DNA of 63,766 nucleotides, the filler included, from Cercozoa sp. M6MM (taxonomy: Eukaryota > Protista > Endomyxa: Ascetosporea): assembly GCA_040357565.1 (NCBI GenBank). It is 10 parts of 10 records of this genome, joined end to end, with 100 filler letters (N's around TTAATTAATTAA, not from the genome) between each part and the next. Parts side by side here need not be neighbours in the genome. Positions count along the whole stretch, not along the records: positions 7,190 to 14,265 come from JBDODJ010000662.1; 9 more parts are not named here. The stretch is one strand, 5' to 3'. Below are positions 7,190 through 17,905 of the stretch, piece by piece. Each line of letters starts with the position of its first letter. The stretch's first letter is position 1. Below the pieces are notes generated by a model. The model saw nothing but the letters and a program-made list of their open reading frames with translations, had not been told where the DNA came from and made no database searches. Position numbers and translations under genes: made by a program.

Positions 7190-9169
7190 TTGGCGTATTT
7201 CGCAGCACGCGCTGCCTTGGCTACACACGTGGTACAGACAGACAGTCCATATGTACCTGTGTCCGTATGGACCTGTGTGTGTGTCCATATGGACAGGACA
7301 CTGTTGTGTACCACGATGCTCGGCGGCCTCCTCGGACTCGCCGTCGTCCTCCTCGCTGTCCGCGTCCTCGTCCTCCCTGTCCAGTTGTACACACCTGTGT
7401 CCATATGGACCACTTCTTGTACTGTCCAGGTTGTACCTGTCCTTGTCCCGATTGGACCGGTTCTTGTTGCACACCTCTGCCAGCGCACTGCGCAGCGAAC
7501 GCTTGCCCTCCTGCCGGGGGGGGTAGGGGTAGGGGTAGGGGTAGGGGTAGGGGGAGCGGGTAGGGGTAGGGGCAAGGGGTGGGAGTAGGGGGAGGGGGGG
7601 GGTGGGGGGGGGGGGTAGGGGTAGGGGTAGGGGTAGGGGTAGGGGTAGGGGTAGGGGTAAAGGACAGAGAGGCAGTGTACAGGCGTGGCCCAGAACATGT
7701 CGTACGACGCCTCGTTCTTGGCGTCCTACCGTGTGAGGGAGGGTAGGGGGTACAGGGGGCGCAGAGGGAGAGAGGGGTGGGTGGGTCAGATGTACCACTC
7801 CGCAGGCACGCAGACACAGATTGCACAGTCGCAGGATCGCCTCCTGTATATTATATATATACTAATTAATATATATACTAGAAATAATAGACATTTATTT
7901 ATACATAATAAAGTAAGACATAGATAGATATACAGACACAGAATAGAGACATATATATATATATGCATCGATATAGAAAGAGGTCTAAAGATACAGACTA
8001 CATGAGTGCCTATATAAAGATATTAATACATTATATATATATGTAGATGTACAGATATATAATGTATGCAGACAGACCTGCGACTCGCGTTCGGTGGCAG
8101 CGGAGCGGTACTGCAGCGCCCACTGCTTGGCCAGGCCTGTTCACATGGGGAGGGGGTAAGAGGGTAGGAGGGAAGGGGGGGGGTAAAGCACACGGTACTC
8201 TTGGCCTGTGCGCGAGTGCGGCACTTGCACAGTTTGTCGAACAGCGAGCCTGTCTACACACACACACACACACACACTTAGTTGTACACCTACTCCCTAC
8301 CCCTTGTCCCCTGGCTAAAAGTACCGCATCCACAACGGCGACTTCCTTCTTTTTCCGACTCGCTTTCGCCTTTGTCTTGCGTTTCTTCTCTGAGAGAAAA
8401 ATACGAGAATACCGAGGAAAAAAGAAAAGAAAGGTACTAGCAGGCTGCGCTTTCGTCTTGACGGGTTCCTCAAAGTCCTCGTCTGCACTCCAGGTCAGTT
8501 TATTCAGTCAAATCGGTTCGGTCAAACCAGTTTCGTCAAATCAGTTCAGTCAAATTCAGTTCAGTTCAGTCCAATTCAGTCAAATTCAGTTCAGAAAATC
8601 AACTCAGTTCAGTCAAAATAAGTTAACACAGAGGGAAGAAAAAAAATAAAACGCAAAGGCGACAAACTCACCGTCGTCGTTGTCGGAGGGAACTTCGATG
8701 TCGAAATCTTCATCTTCTTCTCCCGCTGCTTCGTCTTCTTCTTCTTCTTCTTCTTCTTCTTCTTGGTGCTCTTCTTCTTCCTCGTCGTTGTCTCGCATCT
8801 GATTCTCCTTGTCTTCTTCTTCTTCGTTGTCTTCGTCAGTCGGTTCCTGTTTGGTGTCCTTCTTGCCCTTCTTCGACTTCGACTTTGGCTTTCTCGACTT
8901 TGACTTTGCCTTTGACTTTGACTTTGCCTTGGCCTTTGACTGCCTCTTGGTGGAAGCAGCGGCGATTTGTTTCTCCTGCACTTCAATCTGCTGCGAGAAG
9001 GCACTCGACGCCGTCTGCGACGTCTTCATCACCATGTTGCTAAACAAGCCAACTTAGAATTTCAATCCAACTCCAGCAAAAGAAAACAGCGCAATGCGCA
9101 CCCATCGTCGTCATAGGAAACGATCTGACGCGGCGCTGGCGTGCGCTTGCTGCGTCGACGCGGTGGCAT
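7190..9169 (-). CDS. SCC3: Probable cohesin subunit SCC3/STAG (SA), N-terminal part (3'-partial)
   Basis: A basic/acidic disordered N-terminus is followed by spliced LFDKLCKCRTRAQAKSLAKQWALQYRS...EAILRLCNLCLRACGV. This resembles the STAG N-terminal block (LFE.V...VVDDWIESYK...ALLDLINFFIQCSGC). Confidence 0.6.
7517..7658. repeat. (GGGGTA)n telomere-like intronic satellite, C-rich on the sense strand
   Basis: Tandem GGGGTA units and G-runs inside an intron of the minus-strand SCC3-like gene. Confidence 0.9.
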
Positions 9170-9553
9170 GTCTGTACAACACAAAGCAATCCCGGAGCTG
9201 CGTGGTCAGAAATGAGGCGCCAAAAAATACTCTTCTCTTTGTTCGGCTTCTACTCTGAATTTGACCTGTTCAATGCAGTTTAAAAGCAACGGTAGCACCC
9301 CTACACCGCTTGGCAAGCTCTAGAAGCTGCTGAGAGTTTGTTTTATCTTTTGGTACAATTTTCCGATACACAGACCACGCATTGGGCGCTTGCTGTCCTA
9401 CAGCCTAGCATTTAGGGTTTACGGACGATGTAGCTAGCTTTATTGTCTATCGACATTAGTTCCCCGTCTACTCCTCGCACCTAGCCCATGATATGTTTTT
9501 CTAGAAAAATATATAATTTGAATGGTGCTCTGTGCTTTGTTCAGCTTCAAAGC

Positions 9554-9750
9554 ATACTCGATCGTGGGCCTCTTGGCTATGATCAAATGTAGTTTCTGTT
9601 CTTAATCTTGTAACAAAGATTAGCAGTCCTTCGTGACTGTCATTTCTGTTACTCACTGTTTGCGGTGATAGTCGGGTGTGTCGATGGCTTGCCACAGCAC
9701 CCGGCGCGCATGGCACCTGGCTCACACTGCCCCAGGTCTCGCCGTGTCAC
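9554..9750 (+). ncRNA. U2: U2 spliceosomal snRNA, divergent variant
   Basis: The 5' block GGCCTCTTGGCTATGATCAAATGTAGTTTCTGTTCTT aligns with canonical GGCCTTTTGGCTAAGATCAAGTGTAGTATCTGTTCTT. Also present: stem IIa TAATCTT-GTAACA-AAGATTA (9603-9622), the IIc partner TGTTAC (9647-9652), stem IIb (9623-9640), stem III with GGCTTGCC, and stem IV CCTGG...CCAGG (9716-9736). Length is ~197 nt. Confidence 0.9.
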
Positions 9751-9776
9751 TCCCCAATTCTTTTTGGTTTGACTTG

Positions 9777-9834
9777 GGTTTTTTATTTAATGAAGCAAAA
9801 GAGCGCCGGGTCCGCAGGTTTTTTATTTAATGAA
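9777..9834 (+). repeat. 18-bp direct repeat GGTTTTTTATTTAATGAA x2 between U2 and NAA20
   Basis: Exact copies at 9777-9794 and 9817-9834. Confidence 0.85.
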
Positions 9835-9890
9835 AGGTTAGTTAAAGCAACATTCATAAGCCTGTGCGTGCGTGGCTGTGGGAGTCTGTG

Positions 9891-10709
9891 ATGACAACAC
9901 TACGTGACTTTCGGCTCGAGGATCTGTTCGAGTACACAAATGTGACACTCGATGTGCTCACCGAAGTGTACACCGACACCTTCTACATGTACTACATGAG
10001 GTATCCCTGTCTCTATATGTCCCCGATCTTAGTATCTTTGACTTTTGTGCACGCGTTTCCTCCTAAACGCAGCAAGTGGCCGCGTTACTTCACAGCGACG
10101 GAAGATCACCAAAAAACGCTGACTGGCTACAGTACCATAATGTGTTTGTCTCTGGTCGAAACCAAGGTGTCTGTGCTCTTAGTGATAGGCAAGGCAGAGG
10201 GCAAGGGTGAGGAGTGGCACGGTAGGCCCTGCTCTGTGTGCTGATCTGGTTGGAAAGCAGACTGTTTTGCACAGGCCACATCTCGGCCGTGACAGTGGAC
10301 CCGCAGTTCCGTCGCCTCGGACTGGCCAGACGCCTCATCCGGGATCTCGAACGCACCTCAGAGGAACTGTACGACACATGGTTCGTCGATCTCTTCGTTC
10401 GTGCCTCCAACAAGCTCGCCATCGGTACCTGTGCTTTGACTAGTGTTCTCAACGTCCACTGTGATGTATGCACCCATGCAGGCATGTATGAGGCACTCGG
10501 CTACGCGATCTACCGCACAGTGCGCGAGTACTACAGCGCCGATCTGCTGCACGCTGCCGAGAACGCTCTGGACATGCGACGCCCGTGTGCCAAGGTACAG
10601 AACACACATACTTTCAATTGTTTAATCATTGCCCGTGCAGGACACGGATAAGAGGTCACTGATCTGCAAGAAACGCGTCGTTTCTCGTGATGAAATACGC
10701 TTTGACTGA
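9891..10709 (+). CDS. NAA20: N-alpha-acetyltransferase 20 (NatB catalytic subunit), 5 introns
   Basis: Spliced MTTLRDFRLEDLFEYTNVTLDVLTEVY...GKAEGKGEEWHGHISAVTVDPQFRRLGLA...FVDLFVRASNKLAIGMYEALGY...REYYS...ENALDMR. Confidence 0.95.
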
Positions 10710-10766
10710 CGGCTGCATTTGATTGAAACTTGACTCACAGCTGAAACTACAGCACTAGTGTAGCAA

Positions 10767-13200
10767 CTACAGTGCATCGGCACGCAGCATGCGGTCCAAA
10801 TGAGTGATCGCGCTGCGTTCGGCAGTGGTAAGCGGCAAGACTTTCTCCATGCGTTCGCTACAGCAAGCAAATAGGGAAACGGGTCAAACAAACCCTCAGC
10901 TCCGGAAACAAGTACACGAAGACATCGGCCTGTCGTCGGAGTGCGGCCACCTCGGCGTGGATCCGTTGCAGCAACGCGACGTTTTCCTCTCGGCTCAGTG
11001 AGTCCAAGTACTCCTCCCGATCGAAAGAGCTCTGCAAAAACACACGCAAACCAATCAGCTTCGTGTATCCAGCAGCATGTAACACGCGTGCAACAAGAAG
11101 CAGCATACTGCGTGTTCGTAAGTTTTATCACGTTGCTTTCTGCAAAAGCATACAAAAGATACAGTCACACAAAACAGGGTTTTGAGCGTACTTATGGTCG
11201 CGGCAAAACGTATCGGCGATCAGCTCGGTGCTCTGATCCTGGAGACTTAAAAGGTTAAACGTATGGCTGCAGCCTCAAGAACGTGTTACCACAAGACGCT
11301 CAATGTCGGCTTTCTCCTCGCGAGCTCTCGGTGCGTCCTGCAGCAGCGTCACTGGAACAAGGTCGGGACATGAGTCAGAAAGTAAGGTAGGAAGGAAGGA
11401 AGAAGCAAGAAGGAAGAAGCAATAAGCAAGGAAGAAGTAAGGAAAGACAAGAAAGGCCAAAGGGGTCGTACTAGCGCATGTGCGCATGTGCACGTTGGAC
11501 AAGGTGGCGATTCGCATTAGCTGCGCCCAATCGGCCAGGGAAAACGACGCAGCGACGTTGGGCCTCTCGTCAATCAGAAGCTTCGGTGCACTCTTCAGGT
11601 ACTACACAACAAACAAACAGGGAAAGGAAGGACAGTTTGACGTTGAAAGCCAGGGGACGAGGATCAAGGTACCCGCGAAACAGTAGACGAGTCCGTTTCG
11701 GCATGCATGCAGTACGACAACGCAAAGGCAAGCAAGGCACTTGTGTATACTGTTAGAGTATAACAGGTGGGAGGGTCGGCAGGGTCAGAAAGAACAAAGC
11801 ATACACGAGCTAAAGGTGTTTTTCTCGCAGGTAGCCAGCAATTTGTCTCGCAAGTGCTTTGTGTCTACCAAGGTGGCACAAGGAGTAAAAGTCATTAAGA
11901 CAAAAGACAAACAGGCACCGATCTGCACGGCGCCGCGACGCATGGTGTCGCTCAGGCGCTTCGTATCGTGTCGCCACACCGAGGAGCGTTCGTTCCCGGC
12001 CACTTGGTTCTACATAGAGATGTGGTAAGGCCAGAGATTATGGAAAGCCAGAGAAGCACACTTGGTACCTCATGCACAGGGTTGAGAGCACAAAACGCAG
12101 TTAGCGTGGTCATCAGGAACTCTCGCAACTGCACAAAACGTCAGCACACGCAACACACAAACACATCGTGTCGAGAGGGCACCAGAGTTTGGTCTCGAGG
12201 TAGCTTGCTGCCGTATTTCTCTGTGCGTGTATATGGCAGTGTACGAATAAAAAAGTCCAACAGTCTATCAATAAACTGAACTAACCAGGCTCGAACGACA
12301 TCAAATAGGTGTACTTGATACCCAAGCGCAGCCGTTGCACCGCGCCAATGTTACTGCAACACAGAGACTCCCGTCAAACCCAAACAAACACATGTGAAAA
12401 CGTGGAAAACATAAGCCAACTTGAGAGGGGTGGCGATAACGTTGGCCAGTTTGACGCAGTGCTCCATCTCGTGTTTCGAAAGGTCGGTACAGCATCTCTG
12501 GAGCAGTACTCGCAGCACCTAAACAGAGACAGAGTAAAATAAACACAAACAACCCACGACTGGCGAAGCTGGAGAAACGCACGATAATAACATTGGCGAC
12601 CAAGACGCGGAAACTGTCGCTTCTCGCCAAGATATCGTCCATCTGCTGCTTCACCTGGTTCAACGGCACCAACACCGAATCGCGCAACAGGCACACTAGC
12701 CACAGCTGCAAAAAAGAAGATTAATAATCGCTTTTGGGAAAAGACAAGGCTACAACGCGCACGCCCGAGTCAGCCTCGTCAGTGAACTCTGTCCCTCCGT
12801 CGTCGGTTTTGGACATCATATGAAAGTTCAGAAACAGCCTGCGCATCTCGTAGGTGCATTCTGCCGGCGAGTGCAGCTTCAAACTGATGACCTGCATCAT
12901 GCGCTTCTGCGCACGCACAAAATCAACAGGCATGCATGCCACAGGAAATCTCAGCGAAACATAGGACTCACCCGCAGGACTGGACTGCTGTGTGCGTAAG
13001 ACGCAAGTCGATTCAATAGGTCGATCTCCTTTTCGCCGCCTTTGTTCTGGGAGAACTGTAGCATATGCACACATAAAAGAAACGCGCCACAAATCACCAA
13101 GTCAACTTGCCCGTCGCGCCCATCGCACACTGCGCGGCAGCCTGTACAGGCACAGCATTGTGCCGATACTCTGACAGCAAGCCCAGACTTGCGGGTGCCT
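10767..13200 (-). CDS. Unknown multi-exon helical protein; 5' end disturbed by a local duplication/inversion
   Basis: GT-AG spliced exons such as KRMMQVISLKLH...EFTDEADSG|LWLVCLLRDSVLVPLNQVKQQMDDIL and ...HLDRMLRADAL*. The start is unresolved. Confidence 0.5.
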
Positions 13201-13392
13201 TCTCTAATGGACAGTGTCCAAATCCAGCACGTGATCGACTTTTCCATTTTCTCAGCGAAATGTAACATTGTGGCAATTGTGCTCTTTTGATGAATAATGA
13301 GGATTCAGTTTGGAGAGCAGATTCGGGCGTGCGCGTTGTAGCCTTGTCTTTTCCCAAAAGCGAATTATTAATCTTCTTTTTTGCAGTTGTGG

Positions 13393-13785
13393 CTAGTGTG
13401 CCTCGTCAGTGAACTTCGCTTGTCGAATCTGCCTCTTTTGATTCGACGACGAGGGAATCAAATGATTCAGTTTGGAGAAGCGAAGTTTGACGGCCTGCTG
13501 TGCGTATTGCAGCAAATACACAAAGTCGAGGATGGTCGGCACCTTCTTGTTGCTCCTGTGGTTCTGTTTGATCTCTTCCTTGGTTTTTTGCGTGCGCTCT
13601 GTCGAGGGGGGGGAGGGTAAAATACCCAGCACCTCCGCTCCTCCTCGACGAGCAGCGACGCGCTCGTCGATCTCGCGTCGACGCCTCGTCATCGTCGTTC
13701 TCGCCAAGATACCATCCATCTGCTGCTTCACCTGGTCCAATGGTACCAGCACCGAATCGCGCAACAGGCACACGAGCCACTGCAA
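13393..13785 (-). pseudogene. Paralogous or rearranged copy of exons of the adjacent unknown gene
   Basis: WLVCLLRDSVLVPLDQVKQQMDGILAR duplicates 12625-12706. The frame ends KFTDEAH* at an inversion breakpoint. Confidence 0.45.
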
Positions 13786-14218
13786 AACGAGTGATTTCCT
13801 TTTTTGGTTTTTGGACAAACAAGGGAAAAAGACAAATCTACAACACCGCACGAAAACCACAAATAAGCCACAGCCAAGTTATGGACAGTGTCCAAATTAC
13901 TGTACAGTGTACAGTCCCTAGGACTGATCAACCTTTCAATTTTCTCAATACTGTACAATTGTAAGTTAACATTGATCAATTGCAAACTTCGGACTCGGTT
14001 TTATTATTATCAGCTATTCGGTGATCGACCCGTTTGAAACGGTGAAACCGGAACCGAGCTGTTCTTCGCCCCGTTGGAAGTGTTGTGCTTTGTACTGTAC
14101 CTGTCCAGTACTCCATTGCAGAACTTCTCTAAACTACTTTTCCACATCTGGCGGGGGTGTATTGACAATGTCGCGCCGCAAACCGTGCAGGTATTGTTTT
14201 GCTTGTTTGTTTGTTTGC

Positions 14219-14265
<47 letters not shown>

Positions 14266-14946
14266 NNNNNNNNNNNNNNNNNNNNNNNNNNNNNNNNNNN
14301 NNNNNNNNNTTAATTAATTAANNNNNNNNNNNNNNNNNNNNNNNNNNNNNNNNNNNNNNNNNNNNACAGACGACTGGGTGCTCGCGAGGGTGTGACGCGG
14401 CCGACGGCGACAACGACAGGCAGTGGTGCCAGTGTGACCGATCACGTGACCACCGACGAAGGCAAACCGGCGCGCTCGGACGGTCTCATGTCAGGCGAGC
14501 TGTCCGACCTGGAACGCTGACTCGCGGCCGACTGACCTTGCCTAGCCTCGCCTCCTGTCGCACTGAACTAAATGCGCGCAGTCTTTGTAGGGCTAGCTAT
14601 TTACAGCATACTGGATCGTATGTCCGCGCGGAAGACATTTTTAGACTTTCATACAACCTCCGTCAAGGGAAGATTTTGACGTGTGTTCACTGGTATCCTG
14701 ACCTACACGCAATAACCCAGTTTGATTAGTTCTTTGAGTCTTTTCTGAAACCAACGAAGGAGTTCCCCTGCACCAGTCCGGGGTGGGTGAACCCTGTTTG
14801 CTTCTCTTTATAAATTTTCCGACTACGTGAAAACTAACGCTGTAAATACCGCACTTTAACGCCCTTTCGGGCTTCAAACCTTCAGTTAAGTCCGTTAAAC
14901 TGCCAGCCGGCGGCGTGCACAGTTGATACAAAAATTGACAGCCGGG

Positions 14947-17905
14947 TCAGTCAAGCATCTTGCGTTCCTCCTCTTCCTCAATCTCGCGCACCACGGAGAG
15001 TCCTTCGTCGTCCTGCGTTCCAGACAGCGACACATAAGCAAGCGGACATGAGGGAGGATAATCAAAACGCTAGATGGCACAATCATGGCATCGGGATCGT
15101 AAAGCTGCCGCTGCCGCGCATCGTTCAGTCGCATCGCTGCTTCGGTTTGCCGCTGCTGCTGTTCGAGGTATTTTAAACGAGCAGTGGCCGCCTTTTCGTC
15201 CTGCAGTGCGTGTGAGCTCGTGAACAAACAAAGCTACAAACACACAGGGCATCTCCTCGGTACCAGCAAGGAATGCCCGATGGCGTTGCCTTCGAACGGC
15301 TGCGCCATCTGACGACAGAACGCGCGGACAGTTGAGACTGCTCACGCAACCGACGCTTTCAAATAAACTGAAGAAAAAAGCAAAGCGCACCTGCGGTTTC
15401 GGTGCTGAGACCAGTGTGCTCGAGCGTGATGTATTTCTGAATCCACTTCGGCAGTTTTTCGCGTTTCTCTGGCCGACTGTACCGCGCATCGGCAAAGATC
15501 ATGAGACCGTAGTCGTTCTTGTTGCGAATCACGCGACCCACACACCTGGCGGGCAGTCACACATATGAGAAAAAGTACGCACCACAAGAAGAAGTGAAAG
15601 AAACTGCGAAGCTTGTCGCAAGGCATCAAACGTCATGAATTCCGAATCGCTAAAAAAGAAAGAAATCACAAAGGAAAGAAGAAACGACGGCGAAACTCAC
15701 CTGACACCGTACTCGTTTTGCAAAAAACGCAATCGTTCGCGCAGCACACGCGAAAGCGAGTATTGGAACGGCACCTGGTTTTGCGTTGAAAAACAAAATT
15801 CGGCAAGACTACTCCAAACTGACCAACAAAAAGAAGCAAAATACGCCAAAGAGAACGACAGCTCGACCATAGTGCCCGGCAAAGTCGATGCCTTCAGCCA
15901 CCTTGCCTCGGGCAACCGACAGGAAGATTGCTCCTGTCAGTCATAAAACAAAGATAGTCCCTGGTAAAAACCACAAGACAACTTGGTACCTCTGCCAGAG
16001 TCACAAGCCTTCTTGTACGCATCCAGTGCAAGCAAGGTTTCCACGACGTCCTTAGTTTCCAAAAACAAAAGCTTGCGTTTCTTCAACTCGTGCAGCACGC
16101 CGCTCTGCAAAAATACAAGAATAAAAAAGTAAATACAAACTCCGAAACAAGCCGAACCTCGTGCCACGCCGCAACGACGTGCTCGAGGTACGAGTACGAC
16201 ACAAAGAAAGCAACGATGCCGTCCGGCACACTGCGTGATAGGTCCAGTAGCAATTCACCTACAAGCAATGATATTCTTGCTTAAAGGGGGTGCGAACAGA
16301 AAACCTAATACCAAAATTGCGCAACACTGCAGCATCGTGTCGCACTTGAAAGCGTGTCGAAATCGGCACTTGGTCCTTTGTGTATCACCAGGAAACTCGA
16401 GGCGCAGAAAGCAAAAGCGAAAAATTTTGGGAGATACCTTGCCTTTCGACACCAGCAGTGGACAGATACACTCGCGAGGTAACGTCGGGTCGAACGATCT
16501 GCTCGATTGGATAAAAAAAGAGTGTACGCACACTAACCGAGTGATGTACTTGAGTTTCGCAACGTTCAGTCTCAAGATTTGCGGGTAAAACTCGAGTGGA
16601 CTCAACGTTCCTGTTAAATAGAAATGAAGCATCGCATAGGTCGTGAAAGCTATCGATGGTACCGCTGGTGATGACCACATTATGAAAGCGCTCCGAAACA
16701 GCACTCATTGCGATTGATGCATCCAAGCAGCTGCAAAAAACTTGAATGCGAAAGCTATCAGTCGTCAAGTGTAAGCTGTTTACCACAGCTGAAGCACAGG
16801 ATCCGGCACGTCAGGAACACTAAAAAGAACAAGCGATACGATTAAAGACACAATCAAGGCAAGCAAAAGAAAACTTACCGATCATCAAACGGCTCCATGA
16901 GAACGCAAAAGCCGCGATCGTAGGCCGAGCTAATTCAACACAAGTTTCGTCGCAGCTTTCGAACAGTCAAACCAAAGAAATTACACGAGTGCAGCGAACT
17001 GAGTGACATAGGTCAAACTGCGAAACTTTTCCGTTTCTGTGATCTGCAAACACAATAGAAAGACGATCAACTAACTTGATATCCAGTCAGAGGAAGCCAA
17101 AAGCTGTCAAAGCTACCTCGAGTGTACGCATCAACAAGTTGAGTCGTTCGTGCACGAAACGCAGCGCGCGCGTTTGGCCTTCATCTTGCGCCTGAACGCT
17201 TAAAACTTGACGCAATGACGAAACACACTATAGCGAAAGAAAAAGACTCACGGTGGCTTTTCGCAGAGTTTTCACGAAGTCTGATGGCGTTTGAGTGAAC
17301 TAACTCGACACAACTTGGTCAACCAAAAGCAAAGTTTGGTTTGGCGAATAATACCACAATTTGTTCCGAAAGACGCTGTTTGAAGTGCTCCACCAGCACC
17401 GACAAAAAACGCAGGAAGTTACGCGTCTGCCAAACAGTACAAAGAATCGAGTAGGATGAGAACAAGCTGTTTAAGAGAACCTTTCGAATGTTGCCAGGCA
17501 GACACTCTTTCATCAGCGCGAGATCTCTAAAGAGCAAAAGGGCCAAATGAATCTTACTCTGTCAAACAGAAAACTCGCAAAAGCTACTTCGGAAGCAGTG
17601 GCGACGGAACGGCCTGCTCCTTCCGTTCATTGCTTTTACTGCATACATGCACTCAAACTTTAAGAATATTGTCAGAAAGTATCCGTACGTGCTTTTGAGG
17701 TCCTTTAGAAGCGACTTGTACGCATCTGCAGCAGATTAAACTTTATTTGTGAATTTTCGATCGAATTTGTGAGAAACGCAAGCTGAAGAAACGTAGCTGT
17801 CTGATTGGAACTAACCCTGCAACTTGCGGATATCCGTGTCTTCCGCGTGTTTTGCTTTCTCTCGCAGCGTCTACAAACAGCTCACAGGTTGTCGAGACAA
17901 CTGCG
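14947..17905 (-). CDS. XPD: TFIIH helicase XPD/ERCC2/Rad3 (5'-partial)
   Basis: Spliced motifs [88 protein letters not shown] and KLPKWI. Confidence 0.97.

Follow-up and report, generated by a model that had tools for sequence, protein, structure and literature searches.

GUAGUU in place of GUAGUA: a lineage-fixed, recurrent one-base variant of the U2 snRNA branch-recognition box in a cercozoan

The GUAGUA box of U2 snRNA is regarded as a near-invariant of eukaryotic splicing. Bases 33–38 of U2 (human numbering, used for U2 bases throughout) pair with the branch-site sequence UACUAAC, with the branch A bulged out and base 38 opposite the first U. According to a 2026 survey, GUAGUA is strictly retained, with two sponges the only exceptions named (PMC13685798); as described there, the sponge U2s with substitutions in the box come from animals, a different lineage from the one analysed here. 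Trypanosomatid U2 departs from GUAGUA lineage-wide, and its genes are reported to be transcribed by RNA polymerase III (PMC4950102). We analysed a stretch of 63,766 nucleotides from Cercozoa sp. M6MM (the window; GenBank assembly GCA_040357565.1), in which the piece 7190–14265 (JBDODJ010000662.1) carries a U2 gene reading GUAGUU. As in trypanosomatids the departure is lineage-wide, yet this U2 keeps five of the six letters of the box. A full-text search, of incomplete coverage, found no literature linking GUAGUU to U2 snRNA, and this variant was not found in the literature on dinoflagellate, syndinian and Perkinsus U2 or in Amoebophrya supplements. The GUAGUU variant of U2 is undescribed in the searchable literature, which is itself incomplete.

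Positions 9554–9754 on the plus strand were assigned by cmscan (Rfam 15) to U2 snRNA (RF00004), with 88.8 bits against a gathering score of 46 (E 3.2e-17). The match covers model positions 1–192 with no truncation at either end, and it is the only one in the piece 7190–14265 to exceed its gathering score. Rfam assigns the locus to U2, and not to U12. At the E-value threshold, the scan of the piece returned no other credible RNA family, the three weak matches lying far under their gathering scores, and no further snRNA beside U2. An earlier note on this DNA had called a divergent U2 with GUAGUU at 9589–9594 and had asked for a scan of the locus with the U2 model; the sequence and the RF00004 match confirm the call, its coordinates and its letters.

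Positions 9554–9603 read AUACUCGAUCGUGGGCCUCUUGGCUAUGAUCAAAUGUAGUUUCUGUUCUU. The conserved 5′ part of the window U2, GGCUAUGAUCAAAUGUAGUUUCUGUUCUU, differs from the RF00004 consensus, GGCuaaGAUCAAGUGUAGUAUCUGUUCUU, at three positions, 9580, 9587 and 9594 (Table 1). On established U2/U6 models, 9580 is presumably a bulge base, flanked by the U6-pairing strands GCU (of helix Ib) and GAUC (of helix Ia). Both strands are kept in GGCUAUGAUC, where one bulge base is altered, and the letters predicted to face U6 in helices Ia, Ib and II are AUACUCGAUCG and GCU-AU-GAUC. Like canonical U2 (RF00004; human RNU2-1, yeast LSR1), the window RNA is full length and has stems I, IIa, IIb, III and IV as well as a IIc-type complement; the GCU and GAUC strands for U6, and GUAGU plus UCUGUUCUU, are common to both. 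Unlike canonical U2, it has GUAGUU, A31, U24 in the helix I bulge, the loop I sequence CUCUU and an atypical Sm site, and its gene has no internal T4 run and is followed by a T5–T7 run.

Table 1. Features of the U2 locus. Positions count along the window.
Feature	Position	Strand	Remarks
Branch-point recognition sequence GUAGUU	9589–9594	+	Human numbering 33–38; five of six letters of GUAGUA
A38-to-U change	9594	+	GUAGUA to GUAGUU against the model consensus
G31-to-A change, within CAAGUG	9587	+	In the stem of the branchpoint-interacting stem-loop, beside the loop
A24-to-U change, within GGCUAAGAUC	9580	+	Two-base bulge between the GCU and GAUC strands
Stem-loop I (UCG..GGCC / GGCU..UGA)	9562–9582	+	Model alignment; loop CUCUU, not CUUUU
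Stem-loop IIa	9603–9622	+	Model alignment; seven pairs, compensatory changes across seven sequences
Stem-loop IIb	9624–9639	+	Model alignment and cross-sequence compensation
IIa loop GUAACA	9610–9615	+	Complement of UGUUAC at 9647–9652
UGUUAC, stem IIc-type alternative pairing	9647–9652	+	Complement of the IIa loop GUAACA
Atypical Sm-site region CUGUUUGCGG	9655–9665	+	Only three consecutive U, without an AU4–6G run; low posterior probability
Stem-loops III and IV	9671–9748	+	Model alignment
T5 run, terminator-like	9761–9765	+	7 nt past the RNA end
TATATAA, possible promoter element	9511–9517	+	Putative; 43 to 37 nt upstream of the RNA start; similar in L007

In the model alignment, stems I, IIa, IIb, III and IV of the window U2 are all paired, with four pairs flagged as non-standard. 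We analysed covariation in seven GUAGUU-type U2s, namely the window RNA and those of metagenome loci L001, L002, L003, L006, L007 and L008 (described below). In stems I, IIa and IIb, pairing is preserved by double changes, and 22 of the 42 predicted pairs include a compensatory case. The IIa loop and its downstream, stem IIc-type complement co-vary and are kept in all seven, as GUAACA/UGUUAC in the window, GUGACA/UGUCAC in L001, L006 and L008, AUGACA/UGUCAU in L003, GUGAU/AUCAC in L007 and UAAUAUC/GAUAUUA in L002. To judge from these changes, the pairing pattern is that of a working, not a decaying, U2. The observation that all stems (I, IIa, IIb, IIc-type, III and IV) still pair, made before from the window alone, thus stands, with the four non-standard pairs added.

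We scanned JGI metagenome contigs for GATCAANTGTAGTTTCTGTTCTT, a scan for the variant pattern only, which yielded eight loci (L001–L008) from marine metagenomes, every one of them a U2 by Rfam (87–151 bits). Viral contigs matched neither the variant 23-mer nor the canonical 23-mer, and hence give no ratio of variant to canonical. Besides the window, the eight loci form three groups. Group A (L001, L003, L004, L005, L006 and L008) reads GGCUAUGAUCAAGUGUAGUUUCUG and comprises five full-length U2s of 135–151 bits and one partial U2 (L005, 93 bits). The change of A38 to U is common to the window and all eight loci; group A further resembles the window in U24 (L001, L003, L004, L006 and L008) and in a GUGACA-type IIa loop, and retains G31. 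The group A genes lie in rDNA spacers in the order 5S (reverse)–U5–U2–U1–U4 (reverse), with the SSU rRNA gene about 1 kb further downstream. The RNAs of these clusters, which come from abundant marine eukaryotes, are all well above the Rfam cut-offs (for example, L004:1–1450 and L006:176–3220). The SSU rRNA gene of L006 looks alveolate, possibly syndinian, with one mismatch to the syndinian probe ALV01, and we take this as a lead only. The genome of Amoebophrya has 5S and spliced-leader genes within the rDNA spacer (PMC12005148).

The U2 of L002 (146.7 bits) is plant-like throughout and, like the window U2, has both A31 and U38. The motif TCCCACAT, which we take to be the upstream sequence element (USE) of plant snRNA genes, occurs exactly twice in the 2341 nt of L002 (0.10 expected), at 567–574 and 1528–1535; it stands 35 nt before the TATA box of the U2 gene and 29 nt before that of a Plant_SRP RNA gene. 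In plants the USE–TATA spacing sets specificity for Pol II or Pol III, a rule echoed by these two spacings. Downstream of the U2 stands CAAGTTCAGTTCAA, a fit to the plant 3′ box, and with these elements the gene has every part of a plant-type Pol II snRNA gene. A distance of 760 nt separates it from the Plant_SRP-type SRP RNA gene, and the source of L002 is probably a marine green alga. The third group is L007 alone, whose U2 (86.9 bits) matches the window RNA in its degree of divergence and keeps G31, with TATATAA at a similar distance upstream to that of the window. Unlike the window, group A and L002 score 135–151 bits and have a normal loop I and normal Sm sites, and their genes stand in rDNA-spacer snRNA clusters (group A) or behind a plant-type promoter (L002); divergence is much greater in the window RNA and in L007 (87–89 bits). 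As far as these comparisons go, GUAGUU occurs in four distinct lineage groups of U2, including the window, and at least two of the groups have it in gene contexts that argue for function. The locus had been put forward as a candidate for an undescribed system; with eight metagenome loci in three further groups, GUAGUU is not unique to it.

The branchpoint-interacting stem-loop is protein-stabilised in vivo. Position 38 forms the edge of the branch helix and also closes the loop of this hairpin. The best hairpin of the consensus (ViennaRNA) pairs 25–45, 26–44, 28–42, 29–41, 31–39, 32–38 and 33–37 and has a three-base loop, in agreement with the published stem-loop, in which G25 is at the base, G31 and U32 are beside the loop and three loop bases are flipped out (PMC13019295). 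In the hairpin model, U38 abolishes the 32–38 pair, that is, the loop-closing U32–A38. Nearest-neighbour dG of the stem-loop was +1.7 kcal/mol for the consensus, +3.0 for G31/U38 and +2.5 for A31/U38 (the window and L002), the last computed as a fold in a shifted register with A31–U38 and A30–U39 pairs; taken alone, the stem-loop is unstable whichever the variant (dG above 0), the differences are within nearest-neighbour error, and thermodynamics therefore separates the variants only weakly. In mutational work, weakening the loop-adjacent pairs of G31 and U32 reduced the disadvantage of weak branch sites (PMC13019295), and the energy differences calculated for U38 fit this published effect of weakened loop-proximal pairs. 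The human mutants of that study, G31U and U32A, have weakened loop-proximal pairs, and the A38-to-U change of the window would break U32–A38 from the other strand. They are, however, laboratory mutants in an orthogonal reporter, whereas the change in the window is natural and fixed, and also alters a base that pairs with the branch site. Most likely, A38U chiefly does no more than weaken the loop-closing pair of the stem-loop. A31 has recurred alongside U38 in two lineages not related to each other, which may reflect compensation. A compensating role of the G-to-A change, as the earlier note had it, agrees with this recurrence, but A31 would regain only about 0.5 kcal/mol, which leaves the idea plausible but weak.

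We delimited 18 GT-AG introns by hand, keeping the reading frames, in the two genes near U2: five in a NAA20-like gene and 13 in a minus-strand multi-exon gene. The introns are 46–120 nt long and end in CAG (13) or TAG (5). Their best yUnAy branch candidates, with branch points guessed, are degenerate. Fifteen candidate motifs were obtained from these introns, and the base facing U2 position 38, again with guessed branch points, was T in nine, G in four, C in two and A in none. By the pairing scheme at position 38, A (or G) is what U38 would formally be expected to favour at this base. An AACUAAC-like optimal branch site had been predicted for this U2; the count of A, nil in 15 candidates, speaks against it, within a small sample of guessed branch points. 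GTAC donors, which had been read as a sign of a remodelled spliceosome, do exist, but they start only 7 of the 18 introns and lend that reading no support.

Among the indexed sequencing runs, no RNA run contained the region 9354–9954. Contigs of a DNA run of this organism (X1, with 84% of the sampled words of that region) and of a marine metagenome from another study (X2, with a small share) were compared over 9000–10800 at a likeness of at least 80%, and variants were counted at a share of at least 5%. X1 is DNA, because the contigs of its flanks span intergenic DNA and introns; these contigs (773 and 3032 nt, depth 289 and 304) are single-copy. Within the U2 body, depth at 9669 was 4005, about 14 times that of the flanks, a rough guide to copy number as contig depths were summed; bin sums over the body, at 10,000–15,000, are inflated by overlapping short contigs. 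Other U2 copies in X1 diverge from the window at 9550/9552 on the 5′ side and at 9751/9755 on the 3′ side and then continue into unrelated sequence. Besides the window's own flanks there are two differing loose ends per side, giving at least three flank contexts. The deep U2 body and the several flank contexts indicate that U2 is a dispersed multi-copy gene. The X2 contig (173 nt) matches 9552–9706 with a single difference and has yet another upstream flank.

The U2 copies in X1 have one variant at a share of at least 5%, T to C at 9669 (1322 of 4005, about two-thirds T and one-third C). This position is in the linker directly 5′ of stem III, and the C there is the single difference of the X2 contig. 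At 9580, 9587 and 9594 no alternative letter reached a share of 5% among U2-like X1 contigs. Likewise, no U2 with the canonical letters reached that share in X1, in a comparison that covers U2s at least 80% alike and that a more divergent canonical U2 would escape. The three substitutions are the state of every visible U2 copy of this organism, and the GUAGUU type is its only visible U2 type.

That sequencing or assembly errors account for the substitutions is next to impossible: depth in the thousands shows no alternative letter, the same RNA was recovered in a different study (X2), and GUAGUU is found in eight independent metagenome contigs as well. We regard this reading as excluded by the X1 depth and the X2 contig, and the three substitutions described in the earlier note as real. 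The dispersed copies could also belong to a repeat or pseudogene family derived from U2 (retro-copies or a SINE-like element), with a working canonical U2 elsewhere in the genome. The locus is indeed multi-copy, its homology stops very nearly at the ends of the RNA, unrelated sequence following on either side, and the Sm site is atypical. The copies, however, are nearly identical, with the one polymorphic site at a share of at least 5% and the canonical A in none; both a poly(A) tail and a target-site duplication are absent around the window copy, a gene-like T run follows each of the three 3′ ends observed, and the structure, with the IIc covariation, is intact. Moreover, the master gene of any retro-copies would itself have GUAGUU. 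We consider such a family quite improbable, in line with the earlier view that this is not a decayed pseudogene, for which the uniform copies, the full-length model match and the compensatory stem changes all speak.

A second, variant major spliceosome beside a canonical one would account for three changes falling in the most conserved part of U2, and U2 variants are reported to be expressed in some eukaryotes, Dictyostelium for example. We nevertheless find it highly improbable here, since the canonical letters at 9580, 9587 and 9594 never reach a 5% share in X1 at a likeness of at least 80%, other snRNAs are absent from the piece 7190–14265, and GTAC is found at only 7 of 18 donors. The remodelled or second spliceosome suggested before is not borne out, as no canonical U2 reaches a 5% share among the X1 contigs at least 80% alike and the 15 candidate branch motifs give no sign of an AACUAAC code, besides the modest share of GTAC donors. 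It is also conceivable that branch recognition has co-evolved, so that U38 (with A31 and U24) favours branch sites in which the fifth base upstream of the branch A is A or G. Base-pairing logic, with position 38 opposite the first base of UACUAAC, would lead one to expect this, as would the fixation of the change in all copies and the joint occurrence of A31 and U38 in the unrelated lineages of the window and L002. The bases found at the relevant position (nine T, four G, two C and no A) do not follow this expectation when set against introns of 39% T and 16% A; the branch motifs are degenerate, making it unlikely that the position is read strongly, and G31 is retained in group A and L007. We therefore hold co-evolved branch recognition to be improbable.

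The preferred reading is that 9554–9754 belongs to a set of roughly a dozen or more near-identical, dispersed genes that encode an ordinary U2 of the major spliceosome, with the box fixed as GUAGUU. We think this likely: the data establish what the RNA is, its structure, the uniformity of its copies and the presence of GUAGUU in other lineages, while expression, function and the effect on the stem-loop are inferred. The variant is a lineage-fixed, recurrent one-base change in the branch-recognition box of U2, a rare natural variant of the ordinary spliceosome and no new splicing system. On the proposed mechanism, the window U2 would work like any other U2: its GCU and GAUC strands would pair with U6, stems IIa and IIc would toggle, and bases 33–37 would pair with the degenerate yUnAy-type branch sites of short GT-AG introns. 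A38U would remove the loop-closing U32–A38 pair and weaken the already marginal hairpin by about 1 kcal/mol, and the neighbouring change of G31 to A may regain about half of this loss. A38U would also alter the identity of the intron base, five positions 5′ of the branch A, with which U2 could pair. Because local branch sites are degenerate at the facing position, A38U is probably close to neutral, or makes branch-site discrimination slightly looser. What the case offers is a genome whose entire visible U2 family has GUAGUU, together with three more environmental groups in which the variant sits in otherwise normal, gene-like U2 loci. Its value lies in a documented, recurrent exception to GUAGUA that can be tested in orthogonal U2 systems.

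The T5 run after the window gene has its counterpart in T7 runs at the matching place in two other U2 copies, seen as loose ends in X1 (three copies were inspected in all); in the piece 7190–14265, 2% of positions (0.02 per site) have a run of at least five T within 15 nt. The window U2 has no internal run of four or more T, loop I being CUCUU and the Sm region having only UUU; each of the seven metagenome U2s has at least one. A conserved T run downstream, together with the lack of T4 runs inside the gene, hints at transcription of the window U2 by Pol III, a tentative reading to which we give well under an even chance. Both features are reminiscent of the Pol III transcription reported for trypanosomatid U2. 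Trypanosomatid U2 promoters, however, are upstream tRNA or tRNA-like elements, whereas ARAGORN found no tRNA in the piece 7190–14265, and there is no upstream tRNA-like A/B-box promoter. The stronger proposition, that the U2 genes have switched to Pol III and that A38U (with G31A in two lineages) adaptively retunes the stem-loop for weak branch sites, appears unlikely; if it were true, GUAGUA would be a tunable element and not an invariant of the spliceosome. Between U2 and the ATG of the NAA20-like gene (9891), an exact 18-nt direct repeat, GGTTTTTTATTTAATGAA, is found at 9777–9794 and 9817–9834; a role as back-up terminator or promoter element is conceivable.

The NAA20-like gene (NatB catalytic subunit) occupies 9891–10700 on the plus strand, with five GT-AG introns of 46–72 nt. 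In an exhaustive protein search, with exons taken one at a time, the best relatives of its most conserved exon showed 67–70% identity, the top named match being a chytrid NAA20, and an Atlas search with this exon returned generic GNAT clusters only. An identity no higher than this suggests that the protein library contains no closely related sequenced organism. Among 10 exon-sized ORFs searched against Pfam, the acetyltransferase was the only one named. In the minus-strand multi-exon gene, the exon with LWLVCLLRDSVLVPLNQVKQQMD and its adjoining intron are duplicated (regions 12621–12774, 13317–13403 and 13698–13783). One duplicate is direct (86 nt, 91%) and one inverted (about 86 nt, 87–96%), leaving pseudo-exon fragments upstream of the gene. 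Regions 7516–7660, 7850–8070 and 7242–7422 contain, respectively, a (GGGGTA)n array of about 140 nt, a sharply AT-rich island of about 220 nt amid 50% GC, and palindromic GTCCATATGGAC repeats, and ATGGACAGTGTCCAAAT recurs at 13207 and 13881. The array, the island and the GTCCATATGGAC and ATGGACAGTGTCCAAAT repeats may be remnants of a mobile element.
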